A stretch of DNA of 63,727 nucleotides, counting the filler, from Octopus bimaculoides (lineage: Eukaryota), in the NCBI RefSeq assembly GCF_001194135.2. It is 5 parts of 5 records of this genome, joined end to end, with 100 filler letters (N's around TTAATTAATTAA, not from the genome) between each part and the next. Parts side by side here need not be neighbours in the genome. Positions count along the whole stretch, not along the records: positions 12,249 to 27,564 come from NC_068994.1; 4 more parts are not named here. One strand, 5' to 3'. Shown here one piece after another: positions 12,249 through 23,235 of this stretch. Below the pieces are notes generated by a model. The model was not told the origin of the DNA. It ran no database searches and saw nothing but the letters and a program-made list of their open reading frames with translations. The position numbers and the translations under genes are program-made. Positions within the stretch are counted from its first letter, which is position 1; each line of letters begins with the position of its first letter.

Positions 12249-12344
<96 letters not shown>

Positions 12345-12420
12345 AATAATAATAATAATAATAATAATTTTAATAATAATAATAATAATTTTAATAATAA
12401 TAAATAATTATAATAATAAT
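12249..12420. repeat. (AAC)n(AAT)n microsatellite
   Basis: Seen directly. Confidence 0.98.
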
Positions 12421-12921
12421 TGAAAGACTTCAGACAAAAATCATGCCTCCTCATTGATATGACTGTCCCAATCAATATAAACGTATCTGTCAAGACCTAC
12501 CGAAAACTGAGCAAGTATAAATAAAGATCTTGAAATAAAAATTAGCAAAATGTGGAACCTGCAGACTAAAACAATACCTGTTGTCATAATGACCTAGGAA
12601 TGATAGCAAAAGGGGCTGATTGCTACCTAGCTCAGATACCAGGAAACTCCCAAATGGCAGAAATTCAAAAGATAGTGCTCTTGGGAACTGCCCATATCCT
12701 ACGCAAAATACTTTCTATGTAATCTCAAATTTTAAAACAAACACATAATTTTCTTATGGTTTCTTAAACATTCTCTAGAACAACACTATGTACAAAACCA
12801 AATATATGGCACCCTAGGCATAACACCAACATGAACTTCTAACTTGTTGTCTCTTGAGGTCTCTGGGTGAGACTTGGAGCCAACTTGTACAAATGTAAAG
12901 CAAAAATCAAACATAAAATAA
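12419..12921 (+). mobile_element. 5'-truncated R4/Dong-like (restriction-like endonuclease) LINE 3' end
   Basis: KDFRQKSCLLIDMTVP...KLSKY..DLEIKISKMWNLQTKTIPVVI..LGMIAKG...EIQKIVLLGTAHILRKILSM*, then the 3' UTR. Inserted next to (AAT)n. Confidence 0.8.
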
Positions 12922-12922
12922 C

Positions 12923-13122
12923 AATCCTTTCTACTGGAGGTACAATGCCTGTAATTTTAGGGGGAAGGGACTCGTCGTTTACATTGACCCTAGTAAGTGA
13001 CTGGTACTTTTTTCTGTCGACCTCGCAATAATGAAAAGTGAAAACAACCTCGACGTAATTTGAACTTAGAACCTAAAGAGATGCGTCTAAGCATTTTCCC
13101 CGCCGCGCTAAAGATTCCTCCA
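12923..13122 (-). mobile_element. Family C SINE (old)
   Basis: Degenerate match to the family C core. Confidence 0.6.
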
Positions 13123-13176
13123 TTTCTCTGCGTTTGTTGAAATTGTAAAATATATATAAAACACGTATCATTTCAG

Positions 13177-13313
13177 GTCTTACAAGAAGTATGTGAATTG
13201 TCTGACCGAAGGCATTGGTAAATCCGACGAGGAGCAAGACATGTTCCTCAATTTACTTTATCAAAACGAATCGATGCACATCTCATACGCGGGAATCTGC
13301 CATGACGTAAACG
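13177..13313 (+). CDS. Internal exon A of an uncharacterised Cys-rich, probably GPI-anchored/secreted protein
   Basis: Acceptor atcatttcAG (13175-76), donor aacg|GTAAGA (13314). Open frame xSYKKYVNCLTEGIGKSDEEQDMFLNLLYQNESMHISYAGICHDVN. Phase 2 in, phase 1 out, which matches exon B. Confidence 0.75.
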
Positions 13314-13359
13314 GTAAGAAGTCTCCTAAGTCTGCATTGCAGCATATTATTGTTGTTGT

Positions 13360-13750
13360 GTGGAGGCGCAATGGCCCAGTGGTTAGGGCAGCGGACTCGC
13401 GGTCGTAGGATCGCGGTTTTCGATTCCCAGACCGGGCGTTGTGAGTGTTTATTGAGCGAAAACACCTAAAGCTCCACGAGGCTCCGGCAGGGGATGGTGG
13501 CGAACCCTGCTGTACTCTTCCACCACAACATTCTCTCACTCTTACTTCCTGTTTCTGTTGTGCCTGTAATTCAAAGGGTTGGCTTTGTCACACTGTGTCA
13601 CGCTGAACATCCCCGAGAACTACGTTAAGGTTACACGTGTCCGTGGAGTGCTCAGCCACTTGCACGTTAATTTCACGAGCAGGCTGTTCCGTTGATCGGA
13701 TCAACTGGAACCCTCGACGTCGTAAGCGACGGAGTGCCATACATACATAC
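13360..13750 (+). mobile_element. Full-length family B SINE with a 14-bp TSD, in the intron after exon A
   Basis: TSD ATTATTGTTGTTGT at 13346-13359 and 13751-13764, with an (ACAT)n tail. Confidence 0.92.
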
Positions 13751-14019
13751 ATTATTGTTGTTGTACGCTTGATCGCGTACATATTTAATCCTAACACTCG
13801 CAAATTTATAACTAGGAGTACCACACTGAGGAGAACAATAGGTAAATATAATTTACTTTAAATTCGAAACGCATCAGTCGTTAACATCGAAGTCGTGTGG
13901 ATTCATCATTTTTCTGTTTGCTTACATAGAAAGGTATGTGATTGTCTCGGAGATTTTTTATTGTAGTTGAAAATACATTAGCGTCTATTTCTAATTCAGT
14001 ACGTGGCGAGGCAGTTTTC

Positions 14020-14178
14020 GAGGCAGCTTCTTTCAGTTTTCGTTTACCAAATTCACTCATAAGGCTTTGGTCGACCCGACTATATAGTAGGAGACACCTG
14101 CCCAAGGTGGTGCGCTGTCGGCACTGAAACCGGTATCACGTAGCCACAAGAGCGAATTCCTCAAACAAGCAAGCCATA
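14020..14178 (-). mobile_element. Partial, old family A SINE
   Basis: cttctttcagttttcgtttaccaaattcactcataaggctttggtcg matches family A. Confidence 0.75.
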
Positions 14179-14298
14179 CCCGCTTGCATCAATAAGCAAT
14201 GTCGGTATTAAGTAATGCTGAACGTTTTGTTTTTGCTTCCACGGCTGTGTTGTAAATGTATTCACACCCGTTTAACTACTTTCTTATTTTCCGAGCAG

Positions 14299-14452
14299 AT
14301 CTTATAAAAGGTACCCAATGCTTGGCGATAACCGAAGAGTTGAAAGTATGCTATAATAATTTCGCCAGGTCACTTTCAATGATAACGGAGAAATTTGAAG
14401 CGCCTCTACCTGATCATCCGGCTAGCGGTACCCTGAAAGCGTCAGCCTGCAA
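14299..14452 (+). CDS. Internal exon B of the same Cys-rich protein
   Basis: Acceptor ttcttattttccgagcAG, donor gcaa|GTAAGT. Encodes (D)LIKGTQCLAITEELKVCYNNFARSLSMITEKFEAPLPDHPASGTLKASAC. Phase 1 in, phase 2 out, which matches exons A and C. Confidence 0.8.
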
Positions 14453-14506
14453 GTAAGTATAGAAGGCTAAAAATATATGAGACAATTTTGAGGACCTTAT
14501 GTATAT

Positions 14507-14551
<45 letters not shown>

Positions 14552-14641
14552 NNNNNNNNNNTACCAGTTGCGTACTGGGGTCGATCTAATCGACTGGTCC
14601 CCACCCCCAAAATTTTCGGGCCATGTGCCTAGAGTAGAAAA

Positions 14642-14677
<36 letters not shown>

Positions 14678-14684
14678 CTACACA

Positions 14685-14800
14685 CGTACTGTTGGTGATT
14701 TCTTTTCCTTCTTTAGACTTTTTCCTTCTCTCGTTTCCGACGAAGAGCTACGGTCGTAACGTCAAACTCTTTCTTTTTACCGACCGTCAAGCTAATACTT
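14685..14800 (+). repeat. Short repeat carrying a degenerate hammerhead-like motif; second copy at 57580-57680
   Basis: Both copies share tgttggYgatttcttttcct...gaagag...tcgtaacgtcaaactctttctttttaccga. Confidence 0.7.
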
Positions 14801-14864
14801 TCTTTATGCACGTCCGCTTGTCGTCCGTTAATTTGATTCGTTTATTTGAATCGACTATATACAT

Positions 14865-14918
<54 letters not shown>

Positions 14919-15389
14919 CAATAAGAAAATGGAGGGGATCAATAGGTGGTATTCATCAACTTCTAGACATTATATTATGTCAATTTACTTATTTAGTAAA
15001 ACGACAATTATAACAATATACATACATGTATAACATATTATGCTTTACATATATAATATATAAAATATAAAAATATCAGTAATTATTAAAACATATAACA
15101 TAGAGCAATAGAAATTGGGATAATATCTTACAGCTATTTCAGCCAAGAGGCAATAATACCTCATTCTACTTTTATCCCTCCAGTGGACTGAAGTAATTAG
15201 TAGATGAAATTGAGGTACTTGGGTGTTTCTCTAGGCTTCGTCAGAGGTTTTAGAAAGTATATATAGTTAAGTTATCGTTAAGTTTATCGATCGGTGCGGG
15301 GTATAGCCCAGACTATACTCCCTCCAGACAACCAGGCCAGAATATACCCCTGCCAAGACTATACCCCAGGCTTGCGGACAAATAACACA

Positions 15390-15600
15390 GATGTACCTCA
15401 CTTATAAAAGTTGCCTCTTTAGCCTGCTGGGCTTCAGCGAAGAAGCTGCCAATACCTCAGAGCACAGAACACACTGTGGTCTTTCTACTCGACCAGTAAG
15501 CACAGTGAAACCGAGGCTCAAATATGACTCGTCGTATCTCCTTTTCTTTGTTAAAGACGTTCTACAAATAAATATAATAACAATATGCAAACGTTGTGCA
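15390..15600 (-). mobile_element. hAT (Buster/Charlie-type) transposase N-terminal BED-finger fragment
   Basis: KKRRYDESYLSLGFT...RPQCVLCSEVLAASSLKPSRLKRQL. Confidence 0.8.
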
Positions 15601-15890
15601 GACGGAAGGGCCGCCCCAGGCGACACACACTCTTGCTACGCTAGTATGTGTGTAAGGTATAGAATTGCCTTTGGTACAGAACAGGATGGTAATGCAGTGC
15701 TTATTTACAAAAAGAGAGATTTGGTTTCTACTTTTAGCATGCAGCGGGATCTCATACAGTCTCTTGGCAGTTTATAGCTCCACTTACTCTTCACTTTCTT
15801 TCATTTTTTTTTTTTTTGTTTCACTTGTGTAAACATGTTTGTTTATTATTTCTTAAATATCTTTTTTTTTCTTCTTTGCTTCCGCTCTAG

Positions 15891-16137
15891 CGTGACCGTT
15901 ACAAGATACAAATGCGAACTCGCCATCTACAGGCGCTGCAGCAAGAGAGTTGGGCAAATTATGATGAACTTCTTGGTCGGAGCATTGCCCAGTCGCTGCC
16001 AGATTCAAATGGGAGTGACATCCGAGTACACTGCCATGTATGGAAGCAATATCAGTAGAGTTACTTCCAGTTGGCCCGTGGTGTTCTTGTGTGTTTTACT
16101 CACTCTAAATTCCTCATTCTTCCAAACATTGCAATAA
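15891..16137 (+). CDS. Terminal exon C of the Cys-rich protein, with a hydrophobic GPI-signal-like tail
   Basis: Long polypyrimidine acceptor ending ctctAG (15889-90). Encodes (N)VTVTRYKCELAIYRRCSKRVGQIMMNFLVGALPSRC...SSWPVVFLCVLLTLNSSFFQTLQ*. AATAAA at 16133-16138. Confidence 0.8.
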
Positions 16138-16293
16138 AGTATTTGTATTGTTCTTCGCAGCTTCTGTTTTGTTGTTGTTGTTATCGATGGTGGTTGTAGC
16201 GGTGGTGGTGGTAGTGGTAGTGGTGATGGTGGTTGTGGTGGTGATAATGGTTCTCGTAGTGGTGGTGGTGGTTGTTGTGGTCGTTGTTGTGGG

Positions 16294-16470
16294 GGAGGTG
16301 GGGATGAAGTCGATTACATCGACCCCAGTGTTTCTCTGGCACTTGGTTTATCGACCCTCCCGAGAAGATGAGAGGCAAAGTCAACCACGGCGGAATTTGA
16401 ACTCAGAACGTAGCGGCAAACGAAATACAGCTTAGCATTTCGTCCGGCTCTACCAGCTCCTCGCCGCCTT
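16294..16470 (-). mobile_element. Family C SINE
   Basis: tcgattacatcgaccccagtg...gcggaatttgaactcagaacgtagc. Confidence 0.75.
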
Positions 16471-16759
16471 GTAGCACGTGATAATTGAAGTGAAAATGTC
16501 ATGTCTACTTTCCGCCCTTTTCATTAATCTATTAAGCCATAAAATGTCGCTTTTGTCACGTCACTAGGTAATAATTGATTTATAGCTGTCTCTTCAGTGT
16601 TTAGTACGCTTTAGTACAAGATAGTACTAAAACAGTGGGTTGGGAGCGGGTGAGAGTTTTAATGGAACAGCAACCTGCCAGAAATAGAATCTGTCTGTCT
16701 GTCTGTCTGTACATCAGTCACTGTTCCAATCACTATCTATCTATCTATCTATCTATCTG

Positions 16760-17335
16760 CATGGAAGAGCCTTTTCGAAGGATGGTTTACAAAACATCTT
16801 GTGTTCTGCTGTAGAAAAGTACAGTCTTAGACGTAATAGTTCCAACAATCTTTTCTCCCCGCCCAGTTCAGCTAGATGAGTTTTGTGATAATGTAAGAAT
16901 AGAATATATCCCCAAGAACATAAGGTTTTTACTCCAAACAATGGATCAAGGTGTAGCAGCTAATTTCAAGGCATATCCGGGAAAAAAATTTTCCAAACAA
17001 CTTATAAAAGCAATTGAAGGGGAGATAAATCTACAATTAAAGACTTTTAGAATAAGTTTAGCATAATGAATGTTGTGGGTAACATAGCTAAGTCATGAGA
17101 TGAAGTAAAAGTCTAAGCTTTGAATGGTGTTTAGAAAAATATATAGTCAAGCTGTATACGTGAGCTTACAAGTTTTTCATAAAGCGGACATCTGCGTCAA
17201 ATCTGGAAAGCTATTTTGACACTTGCAAACGTAAGGTCTGAAGATGTCATGGAGGATGACGTGGTCGAACCGCTAGCGTTTCATAGAACAAAAGTTTAAG
17301 TAACGAGGAGCTGATGCTGTTAGGACAAAGTAAGC
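16760..17335 (+). mobile_element. Decayed Tigger/pogo DDE transposase
   Basis: LFEGWFTKH...IEYIPKN..FLLQTMDQGVAANFKAY...LNGV*K...EDDV...SNEELM. Confidence 0.8.
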
Positions 17336-18781
17336 TGGGAAGACATGAAAATACAGAAATACGGGAATATAACATAAAAAGTACAAGAGACAGCATGGCC
17401 GCAGCTCTAAGCTGAAATTATAAACAATAAACTGAGTTCAGTTCGTAGACCGAGAGGATTGCACCATAACCCTCAAATATTTTTGAATAAGGTTCTCAGT
17501 GTGATTGTGAAGTAGCCAGTGAATAAATCGTCACTAAACGTTTGCATTCTTTATATCTAAACATGGATGCCTTGTTACCGCACCGAGTACAATGTAATTA
17601 GCTTTGTGAGAACCTCTCATATAGGCGTTTGGTGCATAGAAGCATGCATAGATACTAGCAGACGAATTTCGTCTGTAAGCTTTTATACATTAAGCGCCTA
17701 CAGGAGTGGGTTTCTCAGAGCTCTAATAACGCAGTATTCGGTGTTATAACTAAGCTTCCATGTTCAGTTGGATATAAAAATTATCTTTTGATATTAATAC
17801 TACTTAATATCAAAATCATCCTCAAATCTGAAACATGGTATGAAATTCGTTAAGAGAATATTCCTCATTTGATCAGTAGCATGACTAATAGAGACCTTGC
17901 ACTGAAAAATGTAAAGGGCATGTCTACTAAATATTAGATATTCACGTTATAATAATTAGTAAATAATCTGAATGTATAATTTCAGATTTAAATAAATGTT
18001 AACGATTATAATGGTGTCTATTTACTCCTGTCATGTCTGTGTACTTGCACACAATTTACTTAGAATAACAATATCCTTTGTGTGAACAAAATAAATTTGA
18101 ACAAATATTATTGTCAAGAAATGTTTTACTATTTTCCATTGTATGTAAATTTTTTAAGTATTCGTATGAAATAAGCACAAATTTGTTAGAAACGGTATTT
18201 TTATGGTTTTTGAGACAAAGCGAGGGTATCCTGTAGCTCACAAAGTTGAAAAAAACTGGGGCCATTTTGGGATTCAAAGACCAAAAGTTAGACAAAAGTA
18301 AGTGTTAGATCTAACTCAAGGAAAATTGTGTTCCTCAAAGTTAACAATTCTAAGATTGGAGGATAAGAGCAGAAAAAAAATGCTTAATTGTTCTTTGAAG
18401 AAGGCAAATACACTTGGATGCACACTCACTAAGCTACCACAACTGCTTCCGTGCTACGAAATATAATAAAATCAAATTCAAATTTAACTTTACACTATAT
18501 GCCGTCTCATACGGGGGAATGCAAGTGTAAAAAGAACAGGTCGATGATCACTCGGCGGCCAACATTAATACGAGCTGAAGACAGTTAACAGTGGAACAGA
18601 TGTTGAAGAGTAACAACCGGTCTCAACCGGTTTCAACCGGTAGAGGAAGCTTGCTTCTCAATGCATTGAATACCTAAGTTTAAATCTAATTCTTTCTATT
18701 AAATATTATCTATTCCCTATACGTAATGCATCTTTAATTTCTTTATTAAATATAGCTATTCTTTTTAATAAAGTTGTATTT

Positions 18782-18885
18782 ACATGCTCATATATTTACA
18801 TTATTTACATTTAACGTAGTGGTTAAGAGCGCGGGCTACTAACCACCAGCTTCCGAATTCGATTCCAGGCAGTGACCTGAATAAT
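18782..18885 (+). mobile_element. Short family D copy with an inverted 5' leader
   Basis: Same leader and tRNA head as 19936-20030. Confidence 0.75.
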
Positions 18886-19602
18886 ATTAAAAAAAAAAAA
18901 ACCATGGTGATTTTTATATATGATTGAATGTTTGAGGGCTGGTGTTGTATGTAAAGTTGTTGACCCAAATTTAATGTTTGTTCTATAATTAATGCTTCCT
19001 TATCTTCGTCTCATTTTATATTCGAGCACTTCTTATGCAGTCCTACAAACACTTTTGTTTCTGTAAAAGGAGACAAATATTATTTCTTACTGTCTCCTTA
19101 TATTTTACTTACATAAAGGTTGAATCGCAATTTAAGTACAAGGAAACGAAGGAAAGAAGGGGGAGGTGAGGGAATACGCCCTGAATTCAAATTCCCGTTT
19201 CAGGGGTCGATCAAATAAGTACCAGTTGAACACTGGGGGTCAATTTAATCGACTTAAGCCCCCTTCACCAAAATTGCTGCCCTTGTGGCAAAATTTGAAA
19301 CATATATTAAATGTTTCAGTTTCTAACATTTAATATGTTGTTGAATATCAAAATATTTTCAATGACTTCATAAAAGAAAAGAAACAAATAAAGAAGAAAA
19401 AAAGAGAAAAAAGGAAAGAAAAAGAAAGAAAGAAAAAGCACTATTATTTATAGCATCGTAATATTATGACTTCCTATTTCATGTTCGGTTGGCCTCAATA
19501 TGTAAAGCATCATGTTATAACCCGAAACCGATCTAACGTTGAGGAAATATTTGAATCAAATTTAAAAGTGCTGAATTTCTTTTTGGCTTTGCTTAGCTGA
19601 AA

Positions 19603-19631
19603 ATGAACAAACTAAACTCCATTATAACGAG
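19603..19631 (+). CDS. GAL3ST: Probable first coding micro-exon of the GAL3ST-family gene (MNKLNSIIT-R); whole exon 19597-19631
   Basis: Acceptor tttctttttggctttgcttAG (19595-96), ATG at 19603, strong donor gag|GTAAGT. Phase 2 matches the next exon. Confidence 0.6.
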
Positions 19632-19935
19632 GTAAGTGTTTGTAGCATTTATAATTATTGTTGATTATTTGTTAATATTTGTTAATATTATCTTTAATTT
19701 AGAAATGAAAACGAATTTTAAATTGCCAATCACTTTAATATTTTCCTCATTGGGTTTATGTGTGCGTGAGTGTACGTATGCCATTATTTCAATTTATTTC
19801 AAGATTTCTTGCTAATAGAAAAAAAACATTTTCTAACCTAGATCCAACATCAACAACAGGGTATGTATGTATGTATGTATGTGCAGATTTGCATGTTTTA
19901 TGTATTTATTCTCATACATATAATTACAAATCTAG

Positions 19936-20029
19936 ACATGCTCATATATTTACATCATTTACATTTGACGCAGCGGTTAAGAGTGCGGGCTACTAACCAC
20001 AAGATTCCGAATTCGATTCCAGTCAGTGA

Positions 20030-20083
<54 letters not shown>

Positions 20084-20262
20084 CAAAATCGAAAAATACC
20101 TTAGGAATGAGAGAACCCAGGTTCGAAATTTCTCCAAGACACGTAATGAAGGCTGGAAGGTATATCAACCGAAACATTGTGTTAACAACAAACAAGATGA
20201 GGATAAATATCTGTCAAATGTAAATAATGTACATAATTCCTCATCTCTTAAGTATAGAACTG
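19936..20262 (+). mobile_element. Family D composite element: tRNA head, (AAT)n and a hammerhead-like 3' module
   Basis: A/B-box head at 19968-20035 and an AAT tract. The body aaataccttaggaatgaga matches the reverse of 11900-11930. Hammerhead-like fold at 20138-20183. Confidence 0.75.
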
Positions 20263-20282
20263 TATTATACCCATATATATTT

Positions 20283-20505
20283 AAATGATGAACTTCTGCA
20301 AAGTTCTACAAATTTTTATACTTCCAGTGATAGATTGGATCTGTAGTCTTCGAATTAGCTTTCTCTTTTCTGGTTTTGAGAAGTCTAATTTCTCAAGATT
20401 GGTATTTAGGCAGTGTGTTACATATCCCAGGGCCCCAATAATTACAGGTATAAACCTGAACTTGTAATCTGGATAGAGTAATTGCAGATTTCTCAATAGT
20501 TCAGC
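20283..20505 (-). mobile_element. RLE-type (R4/Dong-like) LINE ORF C-terminus
   Basis: LRNLQLLYPDYKFRFIPVIIGALGYVTHCL...LQIQSITGSIKICRTLQKFII*. Confidence 0.7.
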
Positions 20506-21371
20506 GTAGGTGTTCTCTCTCTCCCCTCTGTGTGTGTGNNNNNNNNNNNNNNNNNNNNNNNNNNNNNNNNNNNNNNNNNNNNNNNNNNNNNNNNNNNNNN
20601 NNNNNNNNNNNNNNNNNNNNNNNNNNNNNNNNNNNNNNNNNNNNNNNNNNNNNNNNNNNNNNNNNNNNNNNNNNNNNNNNNNNNNNNNNNNNNNNNNNNN
20701 NNNNNNNNNNNNNNNNNNNNNNNNNNNNNNNNNNNNNNNNNNNNNNNNNNNNNNNNNNNNNNNNNNNNNNNNNNNNNNNNNNNNNNNNNNNNNNNNNNNN
20801 NNNNNNNNNNNNNNNNNNNNNNNNNNNNNNNNNNNNNNNNNNNNNNNNNNNNNNNNNNNNNNNNNNNNNNNNNNNNNNNNNNNNNNNNNNNNNNNNNNNN
20901 NNNNNNNNNNNNNNNNNNNNNNNNNNNNNNNNNNNNNNNNNNNNNNNNNNNNNNNNNNNNNNNNNNNNNNNNNNNNNNNNNNNNNNNNNNNNNNNNNNNN
21001 NNNNNNNNNNNNNNNNNNNNNNNNNNNNNNNNNNNNNNNNNNNNNNNNNNNNNNNNNNNNNNNNNNNNNNNNNNNNNNNNNNNNNNNNNNNNNNNNNNNN
21101 NNNNNNNNNNNNNNNNNNNNNNNNNNNNNNNNNNNNNNNNNNNNNNNNNNNNNNNNNNNNNNNNNNNNNNNNNNNNNNNNNNNNNNNNNNNNNNNNNNNN
21201 NNNNNNNNNNNNNNNNNNNNNNNNNNNNNNNNNNNNNNNNNNNNNNNNNNNNNNNNNNNNNNNNNNNNNNNNNNNNNNNNNNNNNNNNNNNNNNNNNNNN
21301 NNNNNNNNNNNNNNNNNNNNNNNNNNNNNNNNNNNNNNNNNNNNNNNNNNNNNNNCAAACAAATTTATTTT

Positions 21372-21759
21372 AATATGGGCTAGGACTGCCTTTCACAGTA
21401 ATTACAGCTTGAATTCTACGAGGTATGGACTCGTACAAAATTTGAATTGTTTCCAAAGGAATTTTTGTCCATTCTTCTACTAAAACAGTCTCCAGTTCTT
21501 GTAGTGATGATGGTGGAGGATATTGACTCCTTATTTGTTTTTCTAAAATGCACCATAAATGTTCAATAATATTGAGATCTGGGGACTGTGGTGGCTAGAT
21601 AAGATGTTCAACTTCACTAGAATGTTCCTTGTGCCATTCAGTAACAACTTTAGCTGTGTGAATTGGTGCATTGTCATCCTGAAAGATTGCGTTTCTCTCC
21701 AGAAACAAATTCATCCTATGGATGCGGAACTGTTTCTGGAGGGAAACGCAATCTTTCAG
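21372..21759 (-). mobile_element. Tc1-family transposase C-terminal fragment with a terminal fold-back
   Basis: Minus strand: NAIFQDDNAPIHTAKVV...PPQSPDLNIIEHLW...PPSSLQELE...IPRRIQAVITVKGSPSPY*. Confidence 0.9.
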
Positions 21760-21981
21760 TGATTTCGAGTCAATATTGTGCTAAGTAACAATAGTTAGTT
21801 TTACTACTGCTTCGGTTGAGTTTTACGTGTTACTAGGTCAAACAACAATAACAACAGCACAAACATATGAACATCCACTACAACAATAAAAAACAACAGA
21901 ATGTTTATTATGCCAAATCCCCTCACCTCGATGAAATAATTTCAAGTCTTAATATTTATAATTCACAATTCTTTGTTACAG

Positions 21982-22144
21982 AGTTCCACCGCTAAGAAAG
22001 AAACTACAATATCAGTTTCTGTTATTGATTTTGTTCTGTCTTATGCTTGTTCTTATACTCTCCAATAATACGACATTGTTCCATAGCGACCAGCCTCATA
22101 AAGAAATGCATTGCTTCCCACAAGAATATATAATATTTATTAAG
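21982..22144 (+). CDS. GAL3ST: GAL3ST-family exon 2: type II transmembrane anchor and stem
   Basis: Acceptor tctttgttacAG, donor aag|GTTTGT. Encodes VPPLRKKLQYQFLLLILFCLMLVLILSNNTTLFHSDQPHKEMHCFPQEYIIFIK. Its phase-0 end joins VHKAGSTT to give C-x-P-x3-IIFIKVHK, matching the family motif CxPxxNIVFLKTHK. Confidence 0.9.
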
Positions 22145-23059
22145 GTTTGTATAAAAAAACCCATCTAGCCTTACTTACTTTTCGTAGCCAACATGCAATC
22201 ACACAGCTAAATAATATTTTACTTAACCTAGTCAGCCCTTTACACTCATTCAACCAATTTTCCGACAATGCTACATTCCGTAAAGTTTCGGAGTATTGCA
22301 TTAAAGTCTTATTCTCTGGAAAAACAAAAAGATATATAAGATAATGAAACCTACAAACTTATATTCGAAACTAAACGAAGGATATAATCTGCTTTTGCCC
22401 ACATTTTTATAGAAAGAAGCTTTCCATATCTGTGGCTAAAATACATATTAAAATGCTTCAAAAACACTTCATTACAAAATATTTTAATTAGAATTCTATA
22501 AAAGTTTCTTATTCAACTACAACATTCATTTTTCGCAATCTCTAACAAGTAAGAATCAAATTTGCATCAGCATACGCCCAACATATTACTACACAATTGT
22601 AAATGCATCTCCGAATGTATTGTTTACTACTCAACATTAAACAAATTCATATGCATATTTAACTGCTGATTCTTTTGAGACAACGTATATATAACACAAA
22701 CACACCTTCTGAAACCAACTTAGACGTACCGAAACTATCTTGTCCGATTATATGCTTTTGTTTTTTTTTTAAATAAGGAGATAAATTATAGCATTAATGA
22801 AAATTAATTTGCTTCCCATACCATACAAAAATTAAGACACGCTCTGTTCGCTTTGTACATTCGAGGTATATATGAGATATTGTCCTCAAATTTTTTCCCT
22901 CTTCAATAGAAACTTTGAAAGAAACTTTAGTTGTTTTCATAGATGCCCATGAATGCTAAAACATTTAAAACCTTTTATAAAATAATCACATGGTGATGTA
23001 GTTATGTCCTTGAATAAGACTTTTATTTCACATTGCTCCAGTCCACTCAGCAATGATTT

Positions 23060-23235
23060 ATACTTGTAATTCAAAGGGTCAGCCTGGTTCCATTCTGTGT
23101 CAGGTGGAATCTCCTTAAGAACTATGTTAAGGACACGCGTGTCTGTGGATTGCTCAGCCACTTGTATGTTAATTTCACGAGCAGGCTGTTCCGTTGGTCG
23201 GATCAACTGAAGCAATAGTCGTCGTAACTGACAGA
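23060..23235 (+). mobile_element. Old 3' fragment of a family B SINE
   Basis: gtaattcaaagggtcagcc...tgctcagccacttg...caggctgttccgttg. Confidence 0.8.

Follow-up and report, generated by a model that had tools for sequence, protein, structure and literature searches.

Several described systems invite comparison with LOC106873399, a gene of Octopus bimaculoides. Neuritin (NRN1/CPG15) is a small protein held by a glycosylphosphatidylinositol (GPI) anchor, the GFR-alpha/GAS1 group is generally known for GPI-anchored, disulfide-rich, helical extracellular domains, and DUF19 (PF01579) is a cysteine (Cys)-rich extracellular domain of nematodes. DUF1397 (PF07165) is the arthropod 27-kDa haemolymph glycoprotein family, which includes the silkworm 27-kDa glycoprotein allergen (PMC8358373); other records of it come from the peritrophic-matrix proteome of a fly (PMC8035744) and from the venom of scutigeromorph centipedes (PMC6878950). 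The octopus exons considered here lie in a window of 63,727 nucleotides, the whole stretch of DNA that was presented, joined from five parts of the O. bimaculoides assembly GCF_001194135.2. We analysed the part at window 12249-27564 (NC_068994.1) and fetched the CM046614.1 record as locus L002 (window position = L002 position + 3240). The explanation that we favour, and which we consider quite likely as a whole, is that LOC106873399 is a five-exon gene for a helical, Cys-rich domain that is most likely GPI-anchored, that this domain defines a family of molluscan proteins, and that the family is probably a distant branch of DUF1397.

The three exons of the window (Table 1) join into a single frame of 178 codons, uninterrupted by a stop; of the nine Cys in the product, eight are in the body and one is in the hydrophobic tail WPVVFLCVLLTL. 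In tblastn comparisons with the orthologous protein of O. sinensis (LOC118766035, XP_036365065.1, 231 amino acids, 74% identical), the first of these exons matched residues 61-105 (89% identity, E 1.7e-23), the second, which is the fastest-evolving, residues 106-157 (54% identity, E 2.6e-15), and the last was 76% identical (E 4.5e-33). In a search of the protein collection, the splice chain read from an internal ATG (13241-13243) was 100% identical to P0001, that is XP_014776230.1 (UniProt A0A0L8H1R7), a 157-residue entry named 'uncharacterized protein LOC106873399 [Octopus bimaculoides]', which has the same three exons and the same junctions. Taken one by one, the exons all match the O. sinensis orthologue, and the splice chain is identical to a database protein; chance open reading frames (ORFs) are therefore ruled out, and that reading was rejected on the homology evidence. 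Judged by homology, the three exons are genuine and constitute exons 3, 4 and 5 of the five-exon gene.

The assembly gap in the second complete intron lies 100 nucleotides past the donor site, between two (TA)n runs. The orthologous protein is continuous over this junction and no residue is missing; the gap is intronic and the orthologue colinear across it, and therefore the frame is unbroken and no coding exon is hidden there. Upstream, the interval 12306-13350 aligns colinearly, at 89% identity, with L001 18733-19788, which holds the corresponding intron and exon of O. sinensis, and tblastn of orthologue residues 1-60 gave no coding match in the part of this intron that lies within the piece. 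The splice sites of the two Octopus genes fall at equal codon phases. At the 3' end, an AATAAA hexamer (16133-16138) overlaps the stop codon and is kept in O. sinensis; it may act as the polyadenylation signal, in which case the 3' untranslated region would be very short.

Table 1. Features of LOC106873399 within the analysed piece (window positions)
Feature	Position	Strand	Basis
3' part of the intron preceding exon 3; starts at an assembly gap	12249..13176	+	homology to O. sinensis intron
Coding exon 3 of 5, (G)SYKKYVNCLTEG...GICHDVN; conserved Cys 3 and 4	13177..13313	+	'tttcag' before, 'gtaaga' after; tblastn
Intron with a ~385-bp SINE-like repeat	13314..14298	+	GT..AG borders
Coding exon 4 of 5, DLIKGTQCLAITEELKVCYNNF...LKASAC(N); conserved Cys 5, 6 and 7	14299..14452	+	'gagcag' before, 'gtaagt' after; tblastn
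Intron with assembly gap 14552-14561	14453..15890	+	GT at 14453, AG at 15889-15890
Last coding exon (5 of 5), (N)VTVTRYKCELAIYRRC...SRCQ... to TAA 16135-16137; conserved Cys 8, 9 and 10	15891..16137	+	'ctctag' before; tblastn
GPI-attachment-like signal: G-S-N (16042-16050), spacer ISRVTSS, hydrophobic run WPVVFLCVLLTL (16072-16107), then NSSFFQTLQ	16042..16134	+	inspection, hydropathy

The public model differs from the full gene in that it begins at the internal Met (13241) and lacks a signal peptide and about 60 N-terminal residues. The O. sinensis gene shows what is missing: it comprises five coding exons across 26 kb, and its product is longer by a signal peptide and 47 other residues. Exon 1 is in fact intact in O. 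bimaculoides, at L002 6606-6642 (ATG AAC ACC ... ATT ATA T|gtaagt), 3.3 kb upstream of window 13177 and outside the piece, on the same chromosome record. It encodes the leader MNTLSLFIILII, the same 12 residues as in O. sinensis, and together with its donor site supplies the N-terminal signal peptide, as judged by hydropathy. Exon 2, the counterpart of orthologue residues 13-60 and of the stretch with the family's first two Cys, gave no tblastn match in the O. bimaculoides sequence examined. In O. sinensis this exon is located ~1.4 kb upstream of the aligned intron block, and the matching place in O. bimaculoides is occupied by 1,496 N (L002 7513-9008). The most economical interpretation is that exon 2 was not assembled and sits inside this ~1.5-kb gap, which borders the analysed piece; the public model is 5'-truncated because exon 2 falls in the assembly gap. 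The full product would be ~235 residues long.

The initial annotation had proposed a hidden three-exon gene, with GT-AG exons chained in phase into about 178 residues with eight Cys, and signal-peptide exon(s) upstream or in a gap. Its borders and phases proved exact and the 178 codons free of stops, and both guesses about the 5' end turned out to be apt, since one exon lies upstream and another is placed in the assembly gap. The three exons are real, but as a count they are incomplete, the orthologue having five; and the gene was hardly hidden, as RefSeq and UniProt already list the truncated, uncharacterised model.

An orthologue is also found in Argonauta hians (Ahia01_000680400), about 50% identical. 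In both it and the O. sinensis protein, the pattern of Cys, the sequons and the C-terminal tail agree with those of O. bimaculoides; in O. sinensis the splice phases agree as well, but the 5' end is complete and the tail is 8 residues shorter. Further relatives were collected with a profile of the two octopus proteins, run in an exhaustive HMMER search against 1.84 billion cluster representatives. Sixteen representatives were retrieved at E <= 1e-3, nine of which also passed E <= 1e-10; the gastropod and chiton proteins are similar over the whole domain, with E-values between 3e-36 and 2e-5. When the family alignments A3 and A5 were used in word-indexed searches, a further seven gastropod and Argonauta members came up and nothing outside molluscs, the second search giving no new member. 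All hits with a named source come from molluscs, two being unnamed (P0003, from JGI/IMG, and P0008, from ENA): cephalopods (two species of Octopus, Argonauta), gastropods (Aplysia, Physella, Candidula, Gigantopelta, Haliotis, Elysia, Bradybaena, Babylonia, Littorina, Nucella, Batillaria and Pomacea) and a chiton (Liolophura). None of the names is descriptive; they read 'uncharacterized', 'hypothetical' or 'unnamed', or are automatic labels ('Secreted protein', 'DUF19 domain-containing protein'). A literature search on the locus names found no papers.

The common domain spans ~150 residues and has six invariant Cys columns, a seventh that is nearly so, and ten in full-length members. The window exons contain all of Cys 3 to 10, and Cys 1 and 2 belong to the missing exon 2, as seen in the O. 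sinensis orthologue. In the family alignment, a CN[VI][ST] sequon beside the seventh Cys is conserved, and this N-x-T/S sequon is carried by the last octopus exon. Full-length members start with a hydrophobic leader, and several family proteins contain two tandem domains. The C-termini fall into two groups, one with a hydrophobic tail and no cytoplasmic part (the octopods, Physella P0004, Gigantopelta, Aplysia, Candidula, the chiton proteins, and the two-domain proteins of Haliotis and Bradybaena), the other with a polar end and presumably secreted. The alignments thus point to a mollusc-wide family that would exist in anchored, secreted and tandem two-domain forms.

Structure prediction, like the searches of representatives, used database proteins in place of the spliced window peptide. 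With a two-sequence alignment, AlphaFold2 gave a predicted local distance difference test score (pLDDT) of 46, too poor for use; with 20 sequences the pLDDT rose to 79, with a predicted template modelling score (pTM) of 0.76 and core blocks at 83-97, and the model is entirely helical. Foldseek found no counterpart of this model in the PDB (best E = 1.0, template modelling score (TM) <= 0.29 among the 50 matches listed) and no match among predicted viral structures. A PDB sequence search with the spliced peptide returned nothing, and with the family alignment as profile the PDB yielded only noise (E >= 0.13). Accordingly, the early suggestion of a Cys-rich helical domain agrees with the model, and so does the statement that no family could be assigned, for neither a Pfam family nor a solved structure matches the octopus protein. 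The idea of a lineage-specific protein needs correcting as far as octopus is concerned, since the gastropod and chiton relatives show that it is not specific to octopus.

Only one link to a named family was seen repeatedly, in matches of the distant members that stay below the curated cut-off. Babylonia P0014 matched DUF1397 at E 2.1e-5 (24.5 bits) over its residues 22-203, corresponding to positions 18-199 of the 207 in the profile, and the same match appears in the precomputed Pfam column of the collection. Ten control sequences derived from P0014 (one reversed, five shuffled with Cys fixed, four fully shuffled) gave no DUF1397 match at E <= 10. Lower-scoring matches were obtained with Bradybaena P0013 (E 0.0044, 16.8 bits, profile 63-188), Physella P0015 (E 0.016, 15 bits, profile 46-200) and Elysia P0016 (E 0.046, 13.5 bits, profile 124-188), as well as with consensus sequences of the secreted subfamily (E 2e-4, 21.2 bits, profile 26-200) and of the two-domain proteins (E 0.008, 16 bits, profile 129-193). 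DUF1397 resembles the mollusc family in being a secreted domain, of ~200 residues; those distant mollusc members that match it do so colinearly, P0014 over nearly the whole profile, whereas three close relatives of P0014 do not match. Some proteins of the mollusc family have a C-terminal anchor signal and some have two domains in tandem, and neither arrangement is known to have been described for DUF1397. On these profile matches, homology is probable but not proven, and we regard the mollusc family as a likely distant branch of the arthropod one.

A coherent working can be proposed for the octopus protein. The exon 1 signal peptide would direct co-translational entry into the endoplasmic reticulum and the secretory pathway; the mature part would fold into one all-helical domain of ~150 residues, braced by five disulfides if the ten conserved Cys pair with one another, and N-glycosylation would occur at the conserved sequons. 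The C-terminal signal would then be cleaved at G-S-N and replaced by a lipid (GPI) anchor, so that the helical domain would be exposed at the outer leaflet of the plasma membrane. Neither a catalytic motif nor an enzyme family was matched, and the surface has diverged quickly between the two Octopus species; a module for binding or recognition, without enzymatic activity, is therefore expected.

Some of the data weigh against this explanation and must be set beside it: (i), the likely attachment triplet of O. bimaculoides, G-S-N, is less canonical than the G-S-S of O. sinensis, and the O. bimaculoides tail runs on for 8 extra residues (NSSFFQTL) past the hydrophobic run. (ii), between the two Octopus species the rate of synonymous substitution (dS) is 0.27 and that of nonsynonymous substitution (dN) 0.17, and the resulting dN/dS of 0.64 (170 codons) suggests weak pairwise constraint. 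(iii), Pfam scans of the octopus protein and of the spliced peptide gave no match, so that the octopus protein is not a DUF1397 member by the Pfam criterion. (iv), the best DUF1397 score in the family, 24.5 bits, is just under the curated gathering cut-off of 25.7 bits, and P0022, P0023 and P0024, close relatives of P0014, had no DUF1397 match.

The first of these points bears on the mode of membrane attachment. GPI-attachment signals usually consist of small residues, a polar spacer and a terminal hydrophobic run. The elements of a GPI protein (leader, small residues, polar spacer and terminal hydrophobic tail) are all recognisable here by inspection and hydropathy; hydropathy peaks at 2.8 at the extreme C-terminus (Kyte-Doolittle, window 11), and there is no cytoplasmic domain. 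The layout of [FYW]-G/N-G/A-small, spacer and hydrophobic end recurs in the Physella, Gigantopelta, Aplysia, Candidula, Argonauta and chiton relatives. The hydrophobic tail is thus most likely a cleaved GPI-attachment signal. The main rival for this step keeps the same gene and the same protein but takes the C-terminal segment for a plain, retained transmembrane anchor with essentially no cytoplasmic tail. The nine residues (NSSFFQTLQ) that follow the 12-residue hydrophobic run in O. bimaculoides, a similar extension in Argonauta, and the charged ends of some relatives (...CKKWTTD in P0011, ...EQKGHHD in P0008) would suit such an anchor. However, 12-13 hydrophobic residues would make a short membrane span, and most tail-bearing relatives stop within the run, with a conserved small-residue motif 8-12 residues ahead of it, and we therefore consider a plain anchor unlikely. 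What the initial annotation had called a GPI-anchor-like protein is in this sense upheld as to the small residues and the hydrophobic tail, which are conserved in a subgroup of the family; the anchoring itself is deduced from these features of the sequence.

The second point raises the question of whether the gene is alive. The O. bimaculoides copy might be decaying or non-functional, lacking exon 2 and evolving near neutrality: exon 2 was not found in the available O. bimaculoides sequence, the public model is truncated at its 5' end, and the dN/dS value is, by rough estimate, not clearly below 1. We consider this very unlikely, as exon 1 and its donor site are intact, none of the three window exons has lost its open frame, its canonical splice sites or any conserved Cys, and the ~1.5-kb N run lies exactly at the expected position of exon 2. 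Against O. sinensis, all Cys are unchanged, there are zero frameshifts, and the sole indel, of 8 codons within the C-terminal tail, preserves the frame; moreover, the family has kept the Cys scaffold across molluscan classes. Weak constraint together with unchanged Cys rather fits a protein whose surface evolves fast over a fixed disulfide scaffold.

The least tenable alternative is that the protein belongs to the GPI-anchored, Cys-rich, helical neurotrophic ligands and receptors, as an invertebrate neuritin or a member of the GFR-alpha/GAS1 group, which we judge most improbable: weak Pfam NRN1 (PF15056) matches over the same stretch occur in two distant relatives (P0010, E 0.0038; P0011, E 0.0079), but these score 17-18 bits against a cut-off of 27, the octopus protein has none, GFR-alpha/GAS1 is likewise without a Pfam match, and no GFR-alpha chain is among the 50 PDB matches listed by Foldseek. 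Neuritin resembles the octopus protein in being small, Cys-rich and secreted with a C-terminal GPI signal, and there is weak local similarity at a C-x8-9-C motif; it differs in having ~90 residues and 6 Cys, against ~150 residues and 10 Cys in the mollusc domain. For the direct comparison we used what we take to be the human neuritin sequence (its match to PF15056 reaches 134 bits), and hhalign gave the family profile a probability of 14.7% over 65 columns. With this value and the sub-cut-off Pfam scores, the neuritin link is unsupported. A GFR-alpha-like fold was rejected on the Foldseek comparison with the PDB described above; the PDB is expected to hold solved GFR-alpha domains.

A broader grouping can be imagined, in which the mollusc family would be the link between arthropod DUF1397, nematode DUF19 and vertebrate neuritin in an ancient bilaterian superfamily of helical proteins braced by disulfides and often GPI-anchored, and the octopus gene would be the invertebrate counterpart of a neurotrophic surface ligand. 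UniRef labels the two-domain protein P0016 of Elysia 'DUF19 domain-containing protein', and we could not reproduce this label, as neither P0016 nor the other two-domain relatives had a DUF19 match at E <= 10; it counts as no more than a lead. Separately, the human neuritin sequence used above weakly matches DUF19 (E 0.0088, below significance). The signals that could tie such a superfamily together (matches of relatives to DUF1397 and to NRN1, the DUF19 name of P0016, neuritin to DUF19) do not reach significance in any case, and a literature search for papers joining DUF19, DUF1397 and neuritin found none. We consider this extension rather improbable, and return to a molluscan family with a probable tie to DUF1397.

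The gene alone adds little to what is known, as RefSeq already has an uncharacterised entry, and its interest is modest because it is real but already annotated. What is new is the corrected five-exon structure, the gap behind the truncated model, the mollusc-wide family and its probable distant tie to DUF1397. The public model can now be amended so as to include a signal peptide. The family itself, shared by cephalopods, gastropods and a chiton, has no name and no Pfam model that captures it, and its predicted fold is confident and has no solved counterpart. If the DUF1397 link is true, a function found in molluscs or in arthropods would transfer to the other phylum, and the molluscan branch would contribute membrane-anchored and tandem-domain forms.

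The piece around the gene (12249-27564) consists of AT-rich animal DNA in which microsatellites and interspersed repeats occur, and tRNA and Rfam scans of it returned nothing. On the same strand, at window 19603-25353, lies a gene for a galactose-3-O-sulfotransferase (PF06990, E 1.5e-30; long ORF 23560-24741, +); its public model has 466 amino acids, and assembly gaps (20539-21355 and 25078-25105) fall inside the locus. The ~385-bp multi-copy repeat of the first complete intron of LOC106873399, which resembles a short interspersed nuclear element (SINE), occupies 13363-13748, 50 bp past the exon 3 donor, and is flanked by direct copies of ATTATTGTTGTTGT. Neither ARAGORN nor Rfam called a tRNA or an RNA family in it. 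Further copies lie at 23095-23246 (+) and 26443-26573 (-), and at least 5 are present in the O. sinensis locus. A second short repeat (~100 bp, of the 'ggtcgat...taccagt' type) occurs at 14562-14652, adjoining the N gap, and at 16301-16400, just past the gene, with more than ten copies in the O. sinensis locus.

In the second complete intron, a block at 15304-15575 shares 95% identity with L001 33970-34244 of O. sinensis, a value above that of the coding exons (74-92%); it could be either a regulatory element under conservation or part of a young transposon. A 74-residue minus-strand ORF in the same intron (15402-15626) has no Pfam match; it may resemble the N-terminus of transposase-derived zinc-finger proteins. 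Two short translated stretches, 12430-12730 (+, '...IPVIIGALG...') and 20281-20496 (-, '...IQKIVLLGTAHILRKIL'), may be degraded 3' ends of a retrotransposon ORF; the latter, scanned as an ORF, had no Pfam match. Microsatellites are found at 12249-12420, with (AAC)n and (AAT)n, and at 14515-14551, 14640-14676 and 14870-14918, with (TA)n, and a GGT/GTT-rich tract lies just downstream of the gene, at 16170-16300.

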